NCBI GenBank assembly: GCA_002794465.1
Contig: MTSL01000081.1
Coordinates: 12,088-21,562 of the forward strand
Direction of reading: 5' to 3'
DNA length: 9,475 nt
From: Paramicrosporidium saccamoebae KSL3
Taxonomy: Eukaryota; Fungi; Cryptomycota
Shown one piece after another: positions 618-8,410 of this stretch. Each line of letters opens with the position of its first letter. The first letter of the stretch is position 1. The notes under the pieces were generated by a model that did no database searches, was not told where the DNA came from, and saw only the letters and a list, made by a program, of their open reading frames with translations. A program made the translations under genes and the position numbers.

Positions 618-1670
618 ATGGATCTAGGCACGTTTTGTGCAGGTCTCCCAGTACGGGGAATCAGTAGCCAGGCTGACCTTGAGCAGTATCTCCTTAGCGA
701 TACGTTCCAGAAATTCTACGCCTTTGTGAAAACACTCTCGGAATCTGTCGCTGGTCTGAAGCTGAGTGATTGTCCGGCGCCCTCTGCCAATGTGCACTGG
801 GCTGCCACTCTACTAGAGCAAATGAGCACGAGTGTGTCGAACTATCCGCCGGTAGAGACGAATTCTCGGTTTGGGAATGCTGCGTTTCGCGACTGGTTGG
901 ATGCTATGCGCGTAATGGTGCCCAAGGAACATTTTGACAAGAAAATTCCCCTCCCCGATGAGGTATCTTCGTATCTGCTCAATTCTCTCGGTGACTATCA
1001 GCGGATCGACTACGGGACCGGCCACGAGGCACACTTTATTGCGTGGCTATACTGTCTCTGTGCATCTGAAACGGGACCATTCTTTACCACCCATGACCAT
1101 TGCTCTCTCATCCTGTCTCTGTTCACCCGCTATATGCATCTCATGCGGCGTCTCCAACAGACATATTGGCTTGAGCCGGCCGGTTCGCATGGTGTTTGGG
1201 GTCTTGACGACTACCACTTCCTGCCCTTCCTCTTTGGCGCTTCCCAGCTCATTAATCATCCGCATCTCCGTCCAAAGTCCATCCACGACCTGGATCTAGT
1301 CGAGGAATATGCCTCTGAATATCTCTATTTTTCATGTGTCGACACCATTAACCGGGTAAAGACGGCCACTCTACAATGGCACTCGCCGATGCTCAATGAT
1401 ATTAGTGCGGTTCGGACATGGAGCAAGGTTAACCAAGGGCTGTTGAAAATGTACAGAGTGGAAGTGCTAGGCAAGGTGCCGATCATGCAACATTTCCTTT
1501 TTGGGAAAATTTTACCATTCCATTCCACGGCACCCAGGACGGATGAGAAACACCGACACAGCATGCGGGGTGACTGCTGTGGCAATCCGCTTCCGTCCAT
1601 CTACTCTGTCACTGGAACAAACCGGTCTGATTGTAACCACAGCCCCTTGTCGAAATTACCGTTTGACTAA
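618..1670 (+). CDS. RRD2: Serine/threonine-protein phosphatase 2A activator (PTPA family, Rrd2/Ypa2-like), 350 aa
   Basis: PTPA hallmark motifs SRFGNAAFRDW, RIDYGTGHE, YWLEPAGSHGVWGLDDYHFLPFLFG and WHSPML..IS..W.KVNQGLLKMY..EVLGKVPIMQHFLFG are present. YWLEPAG and the C-terminal GDCCG..PS favour the Rrd2 paralogue over Rrd1; that assignment is less certain than the family. Confidence 0.95.
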   Translation: MDLGTFCAGLPVRGISSQADLEQYLLSDTFQKFYAFVKTLSESVAGLKLSDCPAPSANVHWAATLLEQMSTSVSNYPPVETNSRFGNAAFRDWLDAMRVMVPKEHFDKKIPLPDEVSSYLLNSLGDYQRIDYGTGHEAHFIAWLYCLCASETGPFFTTHDHCSLILSLFTRYMHLMRRLQQTYWLEPAGSHGVWGLDDYHFLPFLFGASQLINHPHLRPKSIHDLDLVEEYASEYLYFSCVDTINRVKTATLQWHSPMLNDISAVRTWSKVNQGLLKMYRVEVLGKVPIMQHFLFGKILPFHSTAPRTDEKHRHSMRGDCCGNPLPSIYSVTGTNRSDCNHSPLSKLPFD

Positions 1671-1678
1671 ACCATTGT

Positions 1679-2326
1679 TTATATAATTGCATCGTGATCA
1701 GTACTAACGTTGGCATTTTCTGTAGCGGCAGCTTTGGCTTTCATTGCGCCAATATCCAGCTTCAATTGCAACCCAGCTGCTGCCTCCTTCTTTAGCTTTT
1801 TCTTGTGCAGATTCTGATGCCTCCGCCACTTGTCCTTTGCGTCAAAAATTTTGTGGCATCCCTCAAAGGTACATACAAAGGTCGGCGTCATACTCTTTGG
1901 AGGCTTTGTTGTGCGCTCCCGACTCCATCCGCTGAGCAGCATAGTTCGCCCGCCTAGCAGTGTAACTTCACACGGCTCATGGCGCCATTTCCTGGCTCGG
2001 AATTGCCGCATCTCCTGGACGAATGCGACCTGTTCCGGAAACTGAAGTCGTGTCGGTGTGGGCTTGACCAGTTCGTCAGTGGAAGAGGCCATCTTACTTT
2101 TGGGTTTCTTGTAAGGCGTAGCAAAGGCATCCGTCTTTTTGCGTTTAGGGGCGCGCTTTGGGGGCGCCTCTGAGGGCGGGTCACTGGATGGTGCAGGACT
2201 GGCAGCGCGTATCTCTGATAGTTTGAATGTTAGTTTTAGCTTTGGGGTAGTATTTGCAGTGGTGTTGCCGCTAGAATTACCGCTAGCTATTGAAGACGCC
2301 TCCATGCCGTGTTTCGACTCGTCCAT
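1679..2326 (-). CDS. Nuclear protein with a 2W-hairpin (Ies4/YY1-REPO-like) motif and one C2H2 zinc finger, putative INO80 subunit, 215 aa
   Basis: C2H2 finger FVCTFEGCHKIFDAKDKWRRHQNLH (aa 150-174). Motif RKWRHEPCEVTLLGGRTMLLSGW (aa 112-134). Basic NLS-like stretches PKRAPKRKK and KKKLKK. The N-terminus is S/T/P-rich and likely disordered. CDS and finger are confident; the INO80 assignment is inference. Confidence 0.75.
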   Translation of the reverse strand: MDESKHGMEASSIASGNSSGNTTANTTPKLKLTFKLSEIRAASPAPSSDPPSEAPPKRAPKRKKTDAFATPYKKPKSKMASSTDELVKPTPTRLQFPEQVAFVQEMRQFRARKWRHEPCEVTLLGGRTMLLSGWSRERTTKPPKSMTPTFVCTFEGCHKIFDAKDKWRRHQNLHKKKLKKEAAAGLQLKLDIGAMKAKAAATENANVSTDHDAII

Positions 2327-2526
2327 GGAAACCGCGGTACTAGGCCGTTGAGTTGTTGGGTTGTCAGTGCTGGGTTATGTAAGAGTTGGCTTACTAGTCC
2401 TGGCTTATGGGACTGTTGGACTGTGCGATTGTTGGGCCATGCTATGGAATTATTGCTGCCGAGTAGTCACACTGTCGGTTCACTGTTTCAATTCATAATC
2501 AGAGCAGGTTCGATTGACAATTTTAT

Positions 2527-3162
2527 TCAAGCAACACCATCATACATTAATAGAGCCTGCACTATTGTCGGGTCATTTTTCACTCCTTCCCGAAACTCGT
2601 CCAGCGTTAGTTTCTCACTCTCATCCTTTCCCATCACCCTGAACAACTTGGTCACCCGCTTGGCTGGCGTGTCTTCGTCCTCTGGCAACTCCACCATGGT
2701 CCCCATCATCCTGTAGATTGCGTCCACAATGACCAACATATCTGTCCTACTCACCCGCTCATCCCCATCGTAATCATATAAACGAAACGCCCATTGTATT
2801 TTTTCCTCCATCCGTCCACGTGTGGTGATGGAGAGGCCAGCAAGAAACTCGCCAAAGTCAATGCTCCCACTGCCAGAGACGTCGTAGAGACGGAATAGTT
2901 GGCCGGCAAAGGCGGTGCTATCGCCAAAGGGGAAAAAGTTTTCGTACATGGACAGAAACTGTTCCTTGCTCATCAGTCCGCTGGGACATTCTCGCAAGAA
3001 GGCGCGATGCCTGACAAATAAAAAGTGTTGCTGCAGTATACCAATTTAGAATCTCTTTCCTATCATCTACACTATTAATTACTTGCAGGAATTCTTACAA
3101 TGTGTGGTCCTCTGCAGGTCCTGCACAATTTCGGGACTCAGTTTACTATTGGCCTTGCCCAT
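2527..3162 (-). CDS. NCS1: Neuronal calcium sensor 1 / frequenin, join(3162..3099, 3066..3042, 3010..2527), 190 aa
   Basis: Removing two GT-AG introns gives 64+25+484 = 573 nt = 190 aa plus TGA, the canonical NCS-1 length. The sequence starts MGKANSKLSPEIVQDLQRTTHYDRKEILNWHRAFLRECPSG, with an MGxxxS myristoylation motif and the CPSG EF1 signature. FFPFGD, EEKIQWAFRLYD, LPEDEDTPAKRV and DPTIVQAL are also present. Confidence 0.97.
3011..3041 (-). other. Spliceosomal intron 2 of NCS1 (31 nt)
   Basis: GTATACTGCAGCAACACTTTTTATTTGTCAG. It splits the Trp30 codon TG|G, and removal restores the frame and the homology. Confidence 0.92.
3067..3098 (-). other. Spliceosomal intron 1 of NCS1 (32 nt)
   Basis: GTAAGAATTCCTGCAAGTAATTAATAGTGTAG. 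Strong GTAAG donor, TTAAT branch-like site near the acceptor, and an in-frame stop. It splits the Tyr22 codon T|AT. Confidence 0.93.
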
Positions 3163-3256
3163 TTGTGTTGCGAGAGTATATTTACAGACCAGGGGATGTG
3201 AAGAAAAGGGGAGACAGCTACGCTGATCAACCCGTCACTAAGTAATCGGAGTATGG

Positions 3257-3421
3257 TGTTGATGAGCAAGCTAACTTTATTAAAGTATATGGCTCCTCTA
3301 TAGATAGCCATTTCTAATACAACCAAACTGGACTGTGGGACCGCTATCTGAGCCGGACTCACCAGTGGCAAGCGGATGCTGTTAACAGGCGCCTTTAGTA
3401 AAATTAATCCGCTCATCAACC
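3257..3421 (+). repeat. Repeat family E1, copy B (165 bp, uninterrupted)
   Basis: Perfect 10-bp terminal inverted repeat GTTGATGAGC (3258-3267) / GCTCATCAAC (3411-3420). The interior is homologous to 63-328 and 8004-8370. Confidence 0.85.
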
Positions 3422-3482
3422 CCCTTTGTCTCTAATCCATTATATGCTTTCTTTCTTGCACTTGTGATTTTATTTCAACTGA

Positions 3483-4718
3483 TTAGTGGTGACGACGGAT
3501 GATGAAAAATAAGACGGGAAGCAGGCCGGCAATGGCAGTCCACTGGAACAGCACCTGGAAAGCTCGCGAGTTATCGCCAAAATAGTCAAGGACAACTCCT
3601 CCGGCGATCCCTGCGACGATCATTGCCAGCGATCCGTATATGCCATGAAAGGCAGCTAATGCGGTCGTCTCACAGCCTGGGGTAGCCAATGTATTGGCAA
3701 TCTTTGTGCCCGCCATTGTGATGCTCGCATGGTTGATTCCCTTGAGAACTTCTCCAGGGACAGTGATCCAGGAATAGGAACTGGTTGTGGGCGCCAGACC
3801 GTAAATTGCACTCCGGAGAACGCCCGTCAAATGGCCAATCAGCATCACAGTTTCATTGCTCGTATGGGCGACAACGGTTTTGCCGTAAAAGAAGAATAGG
3901 ATCTCGGGTATGAGACGAGCTTGCATGGCTAGTCCATAGTGCAGATCCTTCATCATACGCACCTTTTTGAAGTAGACCGGAACAAATGTACCAACAACAC
4001 AGCGGACATAGCCCGCCATCAGAGTTCCAATAATGAACATGACAAACGGTGAGGATGTTAGCAATCTGGAAACTGGCCCCCACATTGAAGAATTTCCTCC
4101 CACTGCCACAGACTTTTCAAGCTGAATAGACTCTACCGACGGTCTTGGCTGCTCCGCCGATTTCACCGGATAGCATAACATGATTGCTATAAACGATGCT
4201 GTTGACGCGGCCAATGCAATGAACATGAAGCCGTACCCAAACCTTTCAATGCCCCATCCATTCAGAGTGACCACAAGTGCATGTCCCAGACTGCCCCATA
4301 GTCTTTGTCGGCCGAAAGTGTCGGGATCTGGCAGCGATAGCAACACGACTCGATCCAGCAAGGGAGTCATGGCACTTCCAAATACACCCGCCCCGCCGTA
4401 CAATACGCACACAATGATCACACGCCATATCAGACTCTCCTTTGCTCCAATACCAAACCATAGGGCCCCGAATAGGACTGCATACGCTGTCGTGCATCCA
4501 ACCAATATTGCGCGATGTGCGTCAAAGCGCTCCGCCATTCTTCCCCATAGCAGTGAACCGAAGAGAGACAGCACACAAATTGCCGTAATGTATCCATAAC
4601 TATGCGTCGGAATTCCCCAATGTTCTTCCAGATAGTTCGGCGTGTACACGTAGGTGGCGTAAAAGGACAAACTGAGGGACAGATATGCCAGTTTTGGGTA
4701 GAGTAGCAAGTCGTCCAT
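3483..4718 (-). CDS. Major facilitator superfamily transporter (MFSD6 / MFS_1-like type), 411 aa
   Basis: About 12 hydrophobic segments in a 6+6 arrangement with a central hydrophilic loop. LWGRMAERF follows TM2. PLLDRVVL..FGRQRLWGSLG is typical of the MFSD6-like family, and the N-terminus has LLYPKLAY. Substrate unknown. Confidence 0.9.
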   Translation of the reverse strand: MDDLLLYPKLAYLSLSLSFYATYVYTPNYLEEHWGIPTHSYGYITAICVLSLFGSLLWGRMAERFDAHRAILVGCTTAYAVLFGALWFGIGAKESLIWRVIIVCVLYGGAGVFGSAMTPLLDRVVLLSLPDPDTFGRQRLWGSLGHALVVTLNGWGIERFGYGFMFIALAASTASFIAIMLCYPVKSAEQPRPSVESIQLEKSVAVGGNSSMWGPVSRLLTSSPFVMFIIGTLMAGYVRCVVGTFVPVYFKKVRMMKDLHYGLAMQARLIPEILFFFYGKTVVAHTSNETVMLIGHLTGVLRSAIYGLAPTTSSYSWITVPGEVLKGINHASITMAGTKIANTLATPGCETTALAAFHGIYGSLAMIVAGIAGGVVLDYFGDNSRAFQVLFQWTAIAGLLPVLFFIIRRHH

Positions 4719-5643
4719 GCTCGGATGGTGGCTGTGGCTTCTGCGGATGCTCTCACACCGGGATATTCCGGATGCTTATATTGAGCTCAATTTGGACAGT
4801 CAGGTGAGAGGGGAGGAAAGATACCTGATGGTTCTTCCATATGAGGGACTGTCGAATCAGATTAATGGTATACTGAGGGGATTTGAGATGGCGCAGAGGC
4901 TGGGCCGAGTCTTGGTAATACCACCCATTGTGCGGTCTCAACACGAGCCTGACTCGTGTCCGCTGTTAGAGGACTGGCGGTCATTTGTAGACTTTCAAAA
5001 ACTCGGCAGACATGTGTTTCTCGAAAACATCGAGTTGCCCGAGGGCATGTCATGCTATTCTTTTGGCAAATGGCGCAAATGGTCTGTATTTGGAGATACC
5101 ACTAGACGGTTTATGGGAACTGTGTCGACGAAAATGAGACTGAAATGGCGACCTCTGAAGAGTCCGGCAAATTCTTGGATCCTGGCAGACCTTCTTGGAC
5201 ACGACCGTTTTGTTGCAGTTGCTCAGCTTCAACATGTACATTTTGACAAAGCAGTCCACAGCAAGATCAAGGACCTTGGATTTGGTTCATCGTTTGATAA
5301 CCTGGAGATTCCGTATACGGGAGTACACTGGAGAAGGGGAGACTTTGCCGAGGCCTGTAAGAACAAGAAGCAAGAGTCATGTCTGCCGTCTCTGTCAAAC
5401 TTTGGCTCCAGAGTACATGACGGGACCGTGTGGATTGCGACGGATGAGCTGGATTCTATTCCGTCGTTTCGATTGTCATTTCCAAACATTACCTTCCTCT
5501 CCTCTCATAGGGAGTGTGCGAGTCGATACTTTGATGACCTGATACACTTGTGGAAGAGTACTCATTTTATTGGCAACGGCTATTCAACCCTTTCACGCCT
5601 TGTATTTGGACTGAGGAACAATAGCGCAGTGTCTGTATTTTAA
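4717..5643 (+). CDS. GDP-fucose protein O-fucosyltransferase family protein (O-FucT, POFUT-like), 308 aa
   Basis: Motifs EGLSNQ..I..G..MAQRLGRVLVIPP, YTGVHWRRGDF..AC, VWIATDE and HFIGNGYSTLSRLV match the O-FucT pattern (GxxNQ, HxRRxD, ATD, FIGxxxST(F/L)S). Short hydrophobic N-terminus MLGWWLWLL. Confidence 0.85.
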   Translation: MLGWWLWLLRMLSHRDIPDAYIELNLDSQVRGEERYLMVLPYEGLSNQINGILRGFEMAQRLGRVLVIPPIVRSQHEPDSCPLLEDWRSFVDFQKLGRHVFLENIELPEGMSCYSFGKWRKWSVFGDTTRRFMGTVSTKMRLKWRPLKSPANSWILADLLGHDRFVAVAQLQHVHFDKAVHSKIKDLGFGSSFDNLEIPYTGVHWRRGDFAEACKNKKQESCLPSLSNFGSRVHDGTVWIATDELDSIPSFRLSFPNITFLSSHRECASRYFDDLIHLWKSTHFIGNGYSTLSRLVFGLRNNSAVSVF

Positions 5644-5645
5644 AG

Positions 5646-5651
5646 AAAAAA
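5646..5651 (-). terminator. RNA polymerase III terminator (T6)
   Basis: A run of six A on the + strand gives T6 on the - strand, one base after the tRNA-Ile discriminator. Confidence 0.8.
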
Positions 5652-5652
5652 T

Positions 5653-5726
5653 TGGTCCTTGACAGGATCGAACTGCCGACCTTGGCGTTATTAGCACCAC
5701 GCTCTAACCAACTGAGCTAAAGGACC
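5653..5726 (-). tRNA. tRNA-Ile(AAT), 74 nt, no intron
   Basis: GGTCCTTTAGCTCAGTTGGTTAGAGCGTGGTGCTAATAACGCCAAGGTCGGCAGTTCGATCCTGTCAAGGACCA. Acceptor stem GGTCCTT/AAGGACC, anticodon arm TGGTG-CT AAT AA-CGCCA, TTCGA T-loop. Confidence 0.98.
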
Positions 5727-5731
5727 AAATA

Positions 5732-5804
5732 CGCCCAGCGTGGGGCTCGAACCCACGACATTGAGATTAAGAGTCTCACGCTCTACCGACTGAGCTAGCC
5801 GGGC
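5732..5804 (-). tRNA. tRNA-Lys(CTT), 73 nt, no intron
   Basis: GCCCGGCTAGCTCAGTCGGTAGAGCGTGAGACTCTTAATCTCAATGTCGTGGGTTCGAGCCCCACGCTGGGCG. Anticodon arm TGAGA-CT CTT AA-TCTCA, T-arm GTGGG-TTCGAGC-CCCAC. Confidence 0.98.
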
Positions 5805-5881
5805 GGACAAGATGAAGGCACTTTCACTAGTGATAATGCTTAGATATATTAGAATCAAGATTGGCTGTAATATTGGATGTG

Positions 5882-6616
5882 ATGTGGCTATCTCAGTTCT
5901 GTATCGCACTATCTCTGACATGCCTGTGTATTGTATCCTGTGATGACGAGTCCCAGGAAGAGAAACGGCTTCGTCGCTTAGAAACTTTGAAAAGCACTGC
6001 TAGCGAGCGCCACCGCGTCCATCGTGCGCCCAGTTTGTTCGAAAAACTGAAAGAACCCACCATCCAACTCAACCCCGAAACACTCTATGCTGCGCATCAA
6101 GGCAGGACTAGCTTTATTAAGAGCAATGACGTGGGCGGGATCGTGATGCGGGACGGTCGCATAGTTGTGGCGAGTTGCATCTTCCAAAATCAACGGGAAA
6201 AAGAGGGAATGGAACGGGGCAATAAGCTCATAGGATTTGTAAAGAAAGGAAAGGCACTGGGAGTGAGAGACGGCATTGCGGTAAGCATCTTTGCCGACGA
6301 CAAGTTGACCATCAACAGGTCTGGAGACCACTTTAAGGGATGCGTTATAAGATTACTGTCGGGGAGGGTGCGCTTTGATCTGATCAAAAAGGGCTTGAAA
6401 AAGTACGCAGTGGAGGAGGGCGATTATCTGCTATTGGGACCGGAGGAGGAGATGGACAAAATAATCCCCTCCTTGAATGAACTATGCTACAAAGGAAACA
6501 GCATCCAGAACGTTACCGAGACAATCCAGAAATGGGCAAATCCTAGACGCTACGAGTTGACCTTGCTCCTCCACATCGGCACACGCGAATCAGTGTCCTC
6601 CTCCGACAGTGCTTAG
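5882..6616 (+). CDS. Hypothetical protein with a predicted signal peptide, 244 aa
   Basis: Long ORF filling the gap between tRNA-Lys and the next gene. The first ATG is at 5882 and gives MWLSQFCIALSLTCLCIVSC followed by a charged segment (DDESQEEK). No family recognised. Confidence 0.7.
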   Translation: MWLSQFCIALSLTCLCIVSCDDESQEEKRLRRLETLKSTASERHRVHRAPSLFEKLKEPTIQLNPETLYAAHQGRTSFIKSNDVGGIVMRDGRIVVASCIFQNQREKEGMERGNKLIGFVKKGKALGVRDGIAVSIFADDKLTINRSGDHFKGCVIRLLSGRVRFDLIKKGLKKYAVEEGDYLLLGPEEEMDKIIPSLNELCYKGNSIQNVTETIQKWANPRRYELTLLLHIGTRESVSSSDSA

Positions 6617-7960: not shown

Positions 7961-8003
7961 TCCGTAGATTGGGCAAAAAACTGATTGACAAGCGAGTTGG
8001 TTT

Positions 8004-8370
8004 TGTTGGTGGGTGAGCATCATTTATTAAAGTATATGGCTTCTTTGTCGCGTAGTGGGGATAATACCACGGATTTTGTCAGGCGGGGAGAGACGAGATG
8101 GGACGAGAAGAGAATTTATTCAGTCGATTCAACGACCCATTTATAGTCACAAATAACATAACCCCCAAATGGTAAAGACCTCATTATCCTTCATCGATTG
8201 TTCTGATTATCCCTTCTCCAAACTAGGGAACTATTTCCAAAAGACATGCTAATCAGCCTTCTACGTCACATCTCTATAGGTAGCCATTCTTAATACAACC
8301 ACACTCGGCTGTGGGATCGCTATCTGGGTTGGACTCGCCAACAGTAAGTGGATGCTGTATAACAGGGCCT
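8004..8370 (+). repeat. Repeat family E1, copy C, interrupted by E2 at 8046-8270; right end uncertain (possibly about 8410)
   Basis: 8004-8045 (TGTTGGTGGG..TTTATTAAAGTATATGGC) matches the start of copy B. 8271-8370 (CTATAG..TAATACAACC..CTGTGGGA.CGCTATCTG..GGACTC..GGATGCTGT) matches 3298-3393. Confidence 0.85.
8046..8270 (+). mobile_element. Repeat family E2, complete 225-bp copy inserted in E1
   Basis: TGTCGCGTAG...CTACGTCACA, with 8 of 10 terminal bases complementary. Flanks TCTT (8042-8045) and TCTC (8271-8274). E1 copies A and B show the empty site with a single 4-mer. Confidence 0.8.
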
Positions 8371-8410
8371 GCTACTATGGGTTAGTGAAGTATTCGCACA
8401 GACATCAAAC

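Follow-up and report, generated by a model that had tools for sequence, protein, structure and literature searches.

A candidate INO80 A-module subunit in Paramicrosporidium saccamoebae that pairs a two-tryptophan hairpin with a single C2H2 finger

Does a small fungal gene whose product carries a two-tryptophan (2W) hairpin followed by one zinc finger encode a counterpart of Ies4, of YY1, or of neither? The 2W-hairpin has been defined and located on actin-Arp4 for Ies4, and proposed likewise for YY1 (Kunert 2022, PMC9733932); it is the actin/Arp4 anchor of both proteins (PMC9733932; PMC11761322). Ies4 is without DNA-binding domains (PMC9733932), and YY1 has been concluded to be its orthologue (Kunert 2022, PMC9733932). 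An initial annotation, made from the letters of the 9,475-nucleotide stretch of DNA analysed here (the window), had described such a hybrid and suggested that a hairpin with one finger in an apparently basal fungus could link Ies4 and YY1 as one ancestral A-module subunit. The guess at the source was right. The neighbouring MFS transporter gene is on record for contig MTSL01000081.1 (assembly GCA_002794465.1), which belongs to the genome of Paramicrosporidium saccamoebae, a member of the Rozellomycota that parasitises the nuclei of amoebae; this genome measures 7.3 Mb at 47% GC (PMC5701793).

Establishing that the gene exists in its own right is an immediate concern. The ORF list and translation give an uninterrupted, intronless gene on the reverse strand (1679..2326, stop codon included) for a protein of 215 residues, encoded by 1682-2326, with a pI of about 10 and 40 lysines and arginines against 22 aspartates and glutamates. 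The segment originally singled out, 1805..1993, translates to exactly residues 112-174 of this protein. With either possible start, the 215-residue protein is absent from database records, because the GenBank model deposited at the locus (364 aa, 1679..2949, reverse strand) joins the middle of an upstream NCS-1/frequenin-like EF-hand gene to the hairpin/finger gene. A genuine EF-hand/finger fusion was considered and rejected. The EF-hand ORF aligns to residues 36-189 of the 190 in NCS-1 and meets its own stop codon (2527-2529) one residue short of the natural NCS-1 C-terminus, while the true NCS-1 start, MGKANSK, a myristoylation-type N-terminus, is encoded by a first exon that begins upstream at 3162, falls outside the 364-aa model and is followed by a GTAAGA intron. 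Pfam scans of family members, furthermore, found no EF-hands in relatives of the hairpin/finger protein. For these reasons we consider the fusion an annotation artefact, and the hairpin/finger ORF is a real, separate P. saccamoebae gene. It is invisible in public protein sets and would therefore be missed by surveys of domain architecture.

A second GenBank model in the window (524 aa, 4747..6616, forward strand) likewise appears to join separate genes, here an O-fucosyltransferase ORF (4717..5643) and an unrelated 251-aa ORF (5861..6616), which are called separately on a relative's contig. Two opposite-strand tRNA genes would fall within its supposed intron. These genes, for tRNA-Ile(AAU) and tRNA-Lys(CUU) (5652..5727 and 5731..5805, reverse strand), share one orientation with a gap of only 3 nt between them, head to tail, and so may form a dicistronic pair. 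The lower-GC intergenic stretches of the window also hold a dispersed repeat of roughly 150 nt, in three copies with 74-82% identity at about 170-330, 3240-3400 and 7990-8390. One of the copies is split by about 230 nt. The repeat has no Rfam match and accounts for the resemblance between two short ORFs, at 217-417 and 3138-3419.

Relatives of the hairpin/finger protein were collected by two word-indexed searches together with an HMMER scan run exhaustively over 1.84 billion proteins. A further word-indexed search with the hairpin-only alignment gave no matches, family members included, probably owing to the shortness of its query. Twenty-six were found, ten of them contributed by the exhaustive scan, and all come from JGI/ENA metagenomes or Logan SRA assemblies; no named Ies4, YY1 or Iec1 was reached among the 1.84 billion proteins. 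In these relatives the hairpin/finger gene is called as a gene of its own, between the EF-hand gene and PTPA or PRP3, an order kept at four loci and in relatives down to 24% identity. Set beside window positions 618..4718, four metagenome contigs (L001, L002, L007 and L008) retain the order MFS, EF-hand/NCS-1, hairpin/finger, PTPA, PRP3, GT22, with hairpin/finger proteins only 24-50% identical to that of the window. Synteny is thus strongly conserved among uncultured relatives of Paramicrosporidium, and the gene order shared at the four loci suggests that the family belongs to a single clade of Paramicrosporidium-related organisms with compact genomes.

The family shares a fixed order of parts (Table 1). 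A motif PKLKLT[FL]KL is followed by a basic, partly AT-hook-like stretch, a helix with the pattern FVxEMxxF, the R-x-W...W hairpin, a linker of 15-70 residues, and a finger with its basic tail; the usual C-terminus is an LxLKL motif. Exactly one C2H2 finger is present in all 26 members. Of 23 aligned members, 22 have the N-terminal motif, either in the form PKLKLT[FL]KL or as KKLKLTLKL, and the sole exception, P0024, is N-terminally truncated. In other members the basic patch reads GRGRPKK or KKGRPKK, resembling an AT-hook, and weak Pfam AT_hook matches were obtained for P0023, P0026 and the family consensus. The basic tail is rich in lysine or arginine in most members. Most members keep the C-terminal motif, which reads LQLKLNMG or ISLKLKLN; it is missing from a few short ones.

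Table 1. Parts of the 215-residue hairpin/finger protein and their positions in the window.
Feature	Residues	Window position	Strand	Basis or remark
N-terminal motif TTPKLKLTFKLSEIR	26-40	2207..2251	-	Alternating basic and hydrophobic residues; low pLDDT
Basic patch PPKRAPKRKKTDAFATPYKKPKSK	55-78	2093..2164	-	Alignment
FPEQ motif and alpha-helix	95-108 (helix 97-107)	2003..2044	-	AlphaFold2; directly before the hairpin
Two-tryptophan beta-hairpin RKWRHEPCEVTLLGGRTMLLSGWSR	112-136	1919..1993	-	AlphaFold2, conservation, PDB matches; codons of W114 at 1985-1987 and W134 at 1925-1927
Single C2H2 finger FVCTFEGCHKIFDAKDKWRRHQNLH, C-x4-C-x12-H-x3-H	150-174	1805..1879	-	pLDDT 91-95, conserved ligands
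Basic tail KKKLKK	175-180	1787..1804	-	Continues the finger helix; AlphaFold2 helix 164-184
C-terminal motif GLQLKLDIGAMKAKAA	185-200	1727..1774	-	Echoes the N-terminal KLKL motif

Conservation speaks first for the hairpin. Residues 112-134 of the window protein (RKWRHEPCEVTLLGGRTMLLSGW) had been matched to the two-tryptophan pattern, and both tryptophans are kept in every one of the 23 aligned homologues, so that the loss of them which would have told against the initial annotation is absent. Across the hairpin block these homologues are 17-60% identical to the window protein and have only M106, R112, W114 and W134 as invariant positions; that these four persist at such identities argues that the two-tryptophan pattern is not due to chance. 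The interval between the tryptophans is also comparable, with 19 residues in the window protein, 18 in YY1 and 21 in S. cerevisiae Ies4.

Structure prediction is consistent with this. The full-length AlphaFold2 model, built on a 16-sequence alignment, contains the helix, two strands (114-122 and 128-136) forming a hairpin bounded by W114 and W134, and the finger, the rest of the model being disordered. Means of pLDDT over 10-residue blocks are 76-90 across residues 101-140 and 91-95 in the finger. A separate model of residues 92-139, resting on 23 sequences, reproduces the same elements at a mean pLDDT of 87.7, with its helix (model residues 6-16) at 80-91. Ies4 structures are available from S. 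cerevisiae (8A5A/8A5O) and from Chaetomium thermophilum (8A5D/8A5P/8A5Q, where it is chain X). When the full model was compared by Foldseek with 350,542 PDB chains, the Chaetomium Ies4 chains 8a5p_X, 8a5q_X and 8a5d_X took ranks 1, 2 and 6, and the helix-and-hairpin model placed the same three chains at ranks 1-3 (probabilities 0.85, 0.93 and 0.77; TM 0.5), all later matches having probabilities below 0.3. In the match to 8a5p_X, 44 columns of the 48-residue model are aligned with the Chaetomium Ies4 chain, of which 52 residues are modelled, and superposition on 8a5d_X gives an rmsd of 2.0 A over 31 columns. The accompanying E-values of 0.5-1.0 are non-significant, as expected from an aligned segment of only about 45 residues.

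Sequence profiles lead to the other half of the proposed pair. A hairpin-only HMMER profile, built from 23 sequences, obtained two matches among 177,635 distinct PDB sequences, of which the top one, at E 0.079, was the YY1 REPO peptide (4c5i_C); the alignment keeps both tryptophans in register, and the strand pattern likewise. The REPO motif quoted in the initial annotation agrees with this entry. A longer profile, from the N-terminal motif through the hairpin, gave no PDB match at E <= 10. By hhalign, the hairpin scored 20.8 against YY1 REPO (probability 67.5%), 16.2 against Pho and 15.9 against S. cerevisiae Ies4, although in the last comparison only strand 2, with the second tryptophan, aligns. 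Shuffled YY1 peptides scored 7.4-7.6 +/- 1.6-1.9 and in none of 120 trials reached 20.8, whether or not the tryptophans were held in place, so that the YY1 REPO score stands about 7 SD above the shuffles. Shuffles of S. cerevisiae Ies4 reached its observed score in 0/120 and 1/120 trials.

Curated models gave a mixed picture. Pfam INO80_Ies4 (PF08193) matched neither the window protein nor 22 relatives nor the family consensus sequences. Little weight attaches to this failure, since the model also misses S. cerevisiae Ies4. One relative, P0018, does match PF08193 (E 2.2e-4, 21.8 bits, below the 23.9 cut-off), and a spurious Pfam match of equal strength, to TetR_C_3 (E 0.0066), marks the noise level for short segments. 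The only PDB matches of the P0018 hairpin by phmmer, to designed WD40 repeats, were discarded as an artefact of summed weak repeat matches.

Taken singly, none of the similarity scores attains the customary level of significance, and some consideration is due to the view that the gene encodes a small C2H2 transcription factor specific to its lineage and unconnected with any remodeller, its W...W hairpin resembling Ies4 and YY1 by chance. The similarity E-values all exceed 0.05, the motif is short, and the conserved terminal KLKL motifs have no identified counterpart in Ies4 or YY1. Nevertheless, whole-PDB searches by fold and by profile each ranked first a protein that had been named beforehand, Ies4 and YY1 respectively; tryptophan-fixed shuffles of YY1 never attained the observed score; and the near miss of P0018 against the curated Ies4 model falls exactly at the hairpin. 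We accordingly assign this explanation a small probability, and regard the hairpin, with fair confidence, as one of the Ies4/YY1 type. The original 2W-hairpin call is borne out by a predicted hairpin bounded by W114 and W134 whose best PDB matches are Ies4 by fold and YY1 REPO by profile.

A hairpin of this kind need not belong to INO80. The two-tryptophan principle is common to the SWI/SNF-RSC and SWR1/NuA4 modules as well as INO80 (PMC9733932; PMC11761322), and the sequence, with the methods used here, does not tell these complexes apart. The protein might thus be a hairpin client of another actin/Arp module, akin to BCL7, BDH or Rtt102 of SWI/SNF-RSC or to Swc4/DMAP1 of SWR1/NuA4. The hhalign scores for BCL7A (11.4) and Rtt102 (8.8) are, however, comparable to that of a WW-domain control (10.8), all three obtained with unverified reference sequences, as against 15.9-20.8 for Ies4, Pho and YY1. 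Neither Pfam BCL_N nor SANT matched the window protein or the members scanned, and, while Ies4 supplies the first three fold matches of the helix-and-hairpin model, neither Rtt102 nor Swc4 is among the top 50. We regard the hairpin as closer to the INO80 clients than to those of SWI/SNF, and membership of another module as highly unlikely.

The finger is less readily assigned. Its pairing with YY1 had been prompted by the string CTFEGC, common to the window protein and YY1 finger 3, which had been quoted as FQCTFEGCGKRF... and agrees with 1ubd_C. The window finger and YY1 finger 3 do share this string and the C-x4-C spacing, yet the description as YY1-like has no specific support: Sp1, WT1 and TFIIIA resemble the finger at least as closely as YY1 does. 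Over the profile and single-sequence searches, variants of Sp1 finger 2 scored 16.9-18.4 bits against 10.3-10.8 bits for the best single YY1 finger; in the profile search they reached 18.4 bits and YY1 finger 3 reached 10.3 bits. YY1 is placed first by single-sequence phmmer only because three of its fingers sum, at 7.5-10.8 bits each. CTFEGC is typical of the C-x4-C Krueppel class of fingers. Pfam zf-C2H2 matches the window protein at 14.8 bits (E 0.04), below its cut-off, and matched in all 13 members scanned.

Within the family the finger is well conserved. Its second cysteine, both histidine ligands, K159, F161 and K166 are invariant across 23 homologues, and its first cysteine is set in C-x4-C spacing in 18 sequences and in C-x-C spacing in a subgroup of five (P0019, P0022, P0023, P0025 and P0026; for example TCQCGKLF...H-x3-H). 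This subgroup is also distinguished by an insertion before the second tryptophan (GLW or GFW) and by a clear GRGRPKK AT-hook-like motif. At the predicted DNA-contact positions of the finger, assigned by the canonical scheme for C2H2 fingers, the residues are A(-1), D(+2), K(+3) and R(+6). All of these but the alanine are conserved in the core of the family, a pattern that favours a constant ligand. We infer that the finger contacts DNA, helped by its basic flanks. A lone C2H2 finger is often unable to bind DNA by itself, although in the Drosophila GAGA factor a single finger with adjacent basic stretches can suffice; this comparison is a functional analogy with no claim of homology. Three members have weak Pfam matches to the FOXP zinc-finger/coiled-coil domain (FOXP-CC), and the finger and its helix could for this reason mediate protein contacts instead.

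Taken together, these results make the protein most likely, on balance, the P. saccamoebae counterpart of the INO80 A-module client represented by Ies4 in fungi and by YY1/Pho in animals and plants. Binding of its hairpin to actin-Arp4 and membership of INO80 are predictions from the resemblance. With Ies4 it has in common a small size, a largely disordered prediction, and a beta-hairpin that comes after a helix and has a tryptophan at either end, Ies4 also being its best fold match in the PDB. It differs from Ies4, which has no recognisable DNA-binding domain, in adding one C2H2 finger with a basic tail, and in carrying conserved KLKL motifs at both ends. With YY1/Pho it shares the order hairpin, linker, finger, the distance from W134 to the finger being 15 residues (135-149). 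It has only one finger where YY1/Pho combine REPO with four in tandem, and it is without the acidic and His-rich N-terminal region of YY1. YY1/Pho serve in INO80 and in Polycomb recruitment, whereas nothing in the window protein suggests a Polycomb link.

Its combination of a hairpin with one finger is, in architecture, between the fungal and the animal or plant versions of the subunit. Other fungal proteins invite comparison. INO80 has C2H2 accessory subunits in S. pombe (Iec1) and Neurospora (IEC-1), which have been called YY1 homologues and are reported to recruit the complex to target genes (PMC5406019; PMC10097750), and in S. pombe a separate Ies4 coexists with Iec1 (PMC10097750). Like the window protein they are small fungal C2H2 proteins, a likeness drawn from their descriptions.

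The mechanism we envisage builds on this arrangement. The finger sits 15-70 residues downstream of the hairpin on what would be a flexible linker, with a basic extension of its helix beside it. Together with that extension and the AT-hook-like patch upstream, it may contact the extranucleosomal DNA read by the A-module, and the single finger would then represent a minimal form of the DNA-targeting role of YY1's four.

How such an architecture arose is a separate matter. Plant YY1 has a REPO domain and fingers and is associated with INO80 (PMC10146089). Since plants as well as animals thus possess both elements, the ancestral subunit probably had a hairpin and fingers, fungal Ies4 being a reduced form. 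A one-finger protein in the Rozellomycota fits as an intermediate, and its finger could equally be a later addition. We have a modest preference for regarding the finger as the remnant of an ancestral YY1-like array that was wholly lost from Ies4 in Dikarya. We put forward tentatively, as possible rather than probable, that the family preserves an intermediate stage of an ancestral INO80 subunit with hairpin and fingers, and so would show directly that fungal Ies4 arose from a YY1-like protein as fingers were lost step by step.

The contrary history, in which an Ies4 orthologue acquired its finger late within the Paramicrosporidium-related clade, would make the hybrid convergent and uninformative about the ancestor. 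The finger's lack of specific affinity to YY1 (17-18 bits for Sp1 finger 2 against 10-11 for the best YY1 finger) speaks for such a history, as does the fairly narrow clade suggested by a family whose detected members all come from metagenome and SRA assemblies, with gene order shared at four loci, and no annotated fungal protein of the same architecture was encountered among the 1.84 billion proteins. Against this, animal YY1 has the same order, with fingers on the C-terminal side of the hairpin; an ancestor with both elements is the simpler account of plants and animals alike having REPO and fingers in an INO80-associated YY1; a relic would be expected in just such a group as the Rozellomycota, at the base of the fungi; and 25 residues of finger carry too little signal to exclude YY1 ancestry. 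We consider late acquisition unlikely, though deserving of more credence than either chance resemblance or another actin/Arp module.

The proposal that Ies4 and YY1 descend from one A-module subunit is plausible, and not in itself new, having already been concluded elsewhere (PMC9733932); the present locus extends that published orthology. The actin-Arp4 module with its two-tryptophan hairpin client is now regarded as a building block shared by INO80, SWR1, NuA4 and SWI/SNF. Structure is the main foundation for equating Ies4 with YY1, the sequences being too short and diverged to serve. If our reading is true, an Ies4-like helix and hairpin joined to a finger in the deepest fungal branch would provide architectural evidence for common descent, and would date the loss of the fingers to within the fungi. 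The helix, hairpin, linker and finger, about 90 residues in all, form a very small natural construct for asking how linker-DNA sensing by the A-module is altered by a DNA-binding addition. Should the family indeed be a surviving intermediate, the A-module of a parasite with a 7-Mb genome would retain a built-in DNA reader of one finger for targeting or tuning INO80, in effect a minimal YY1.
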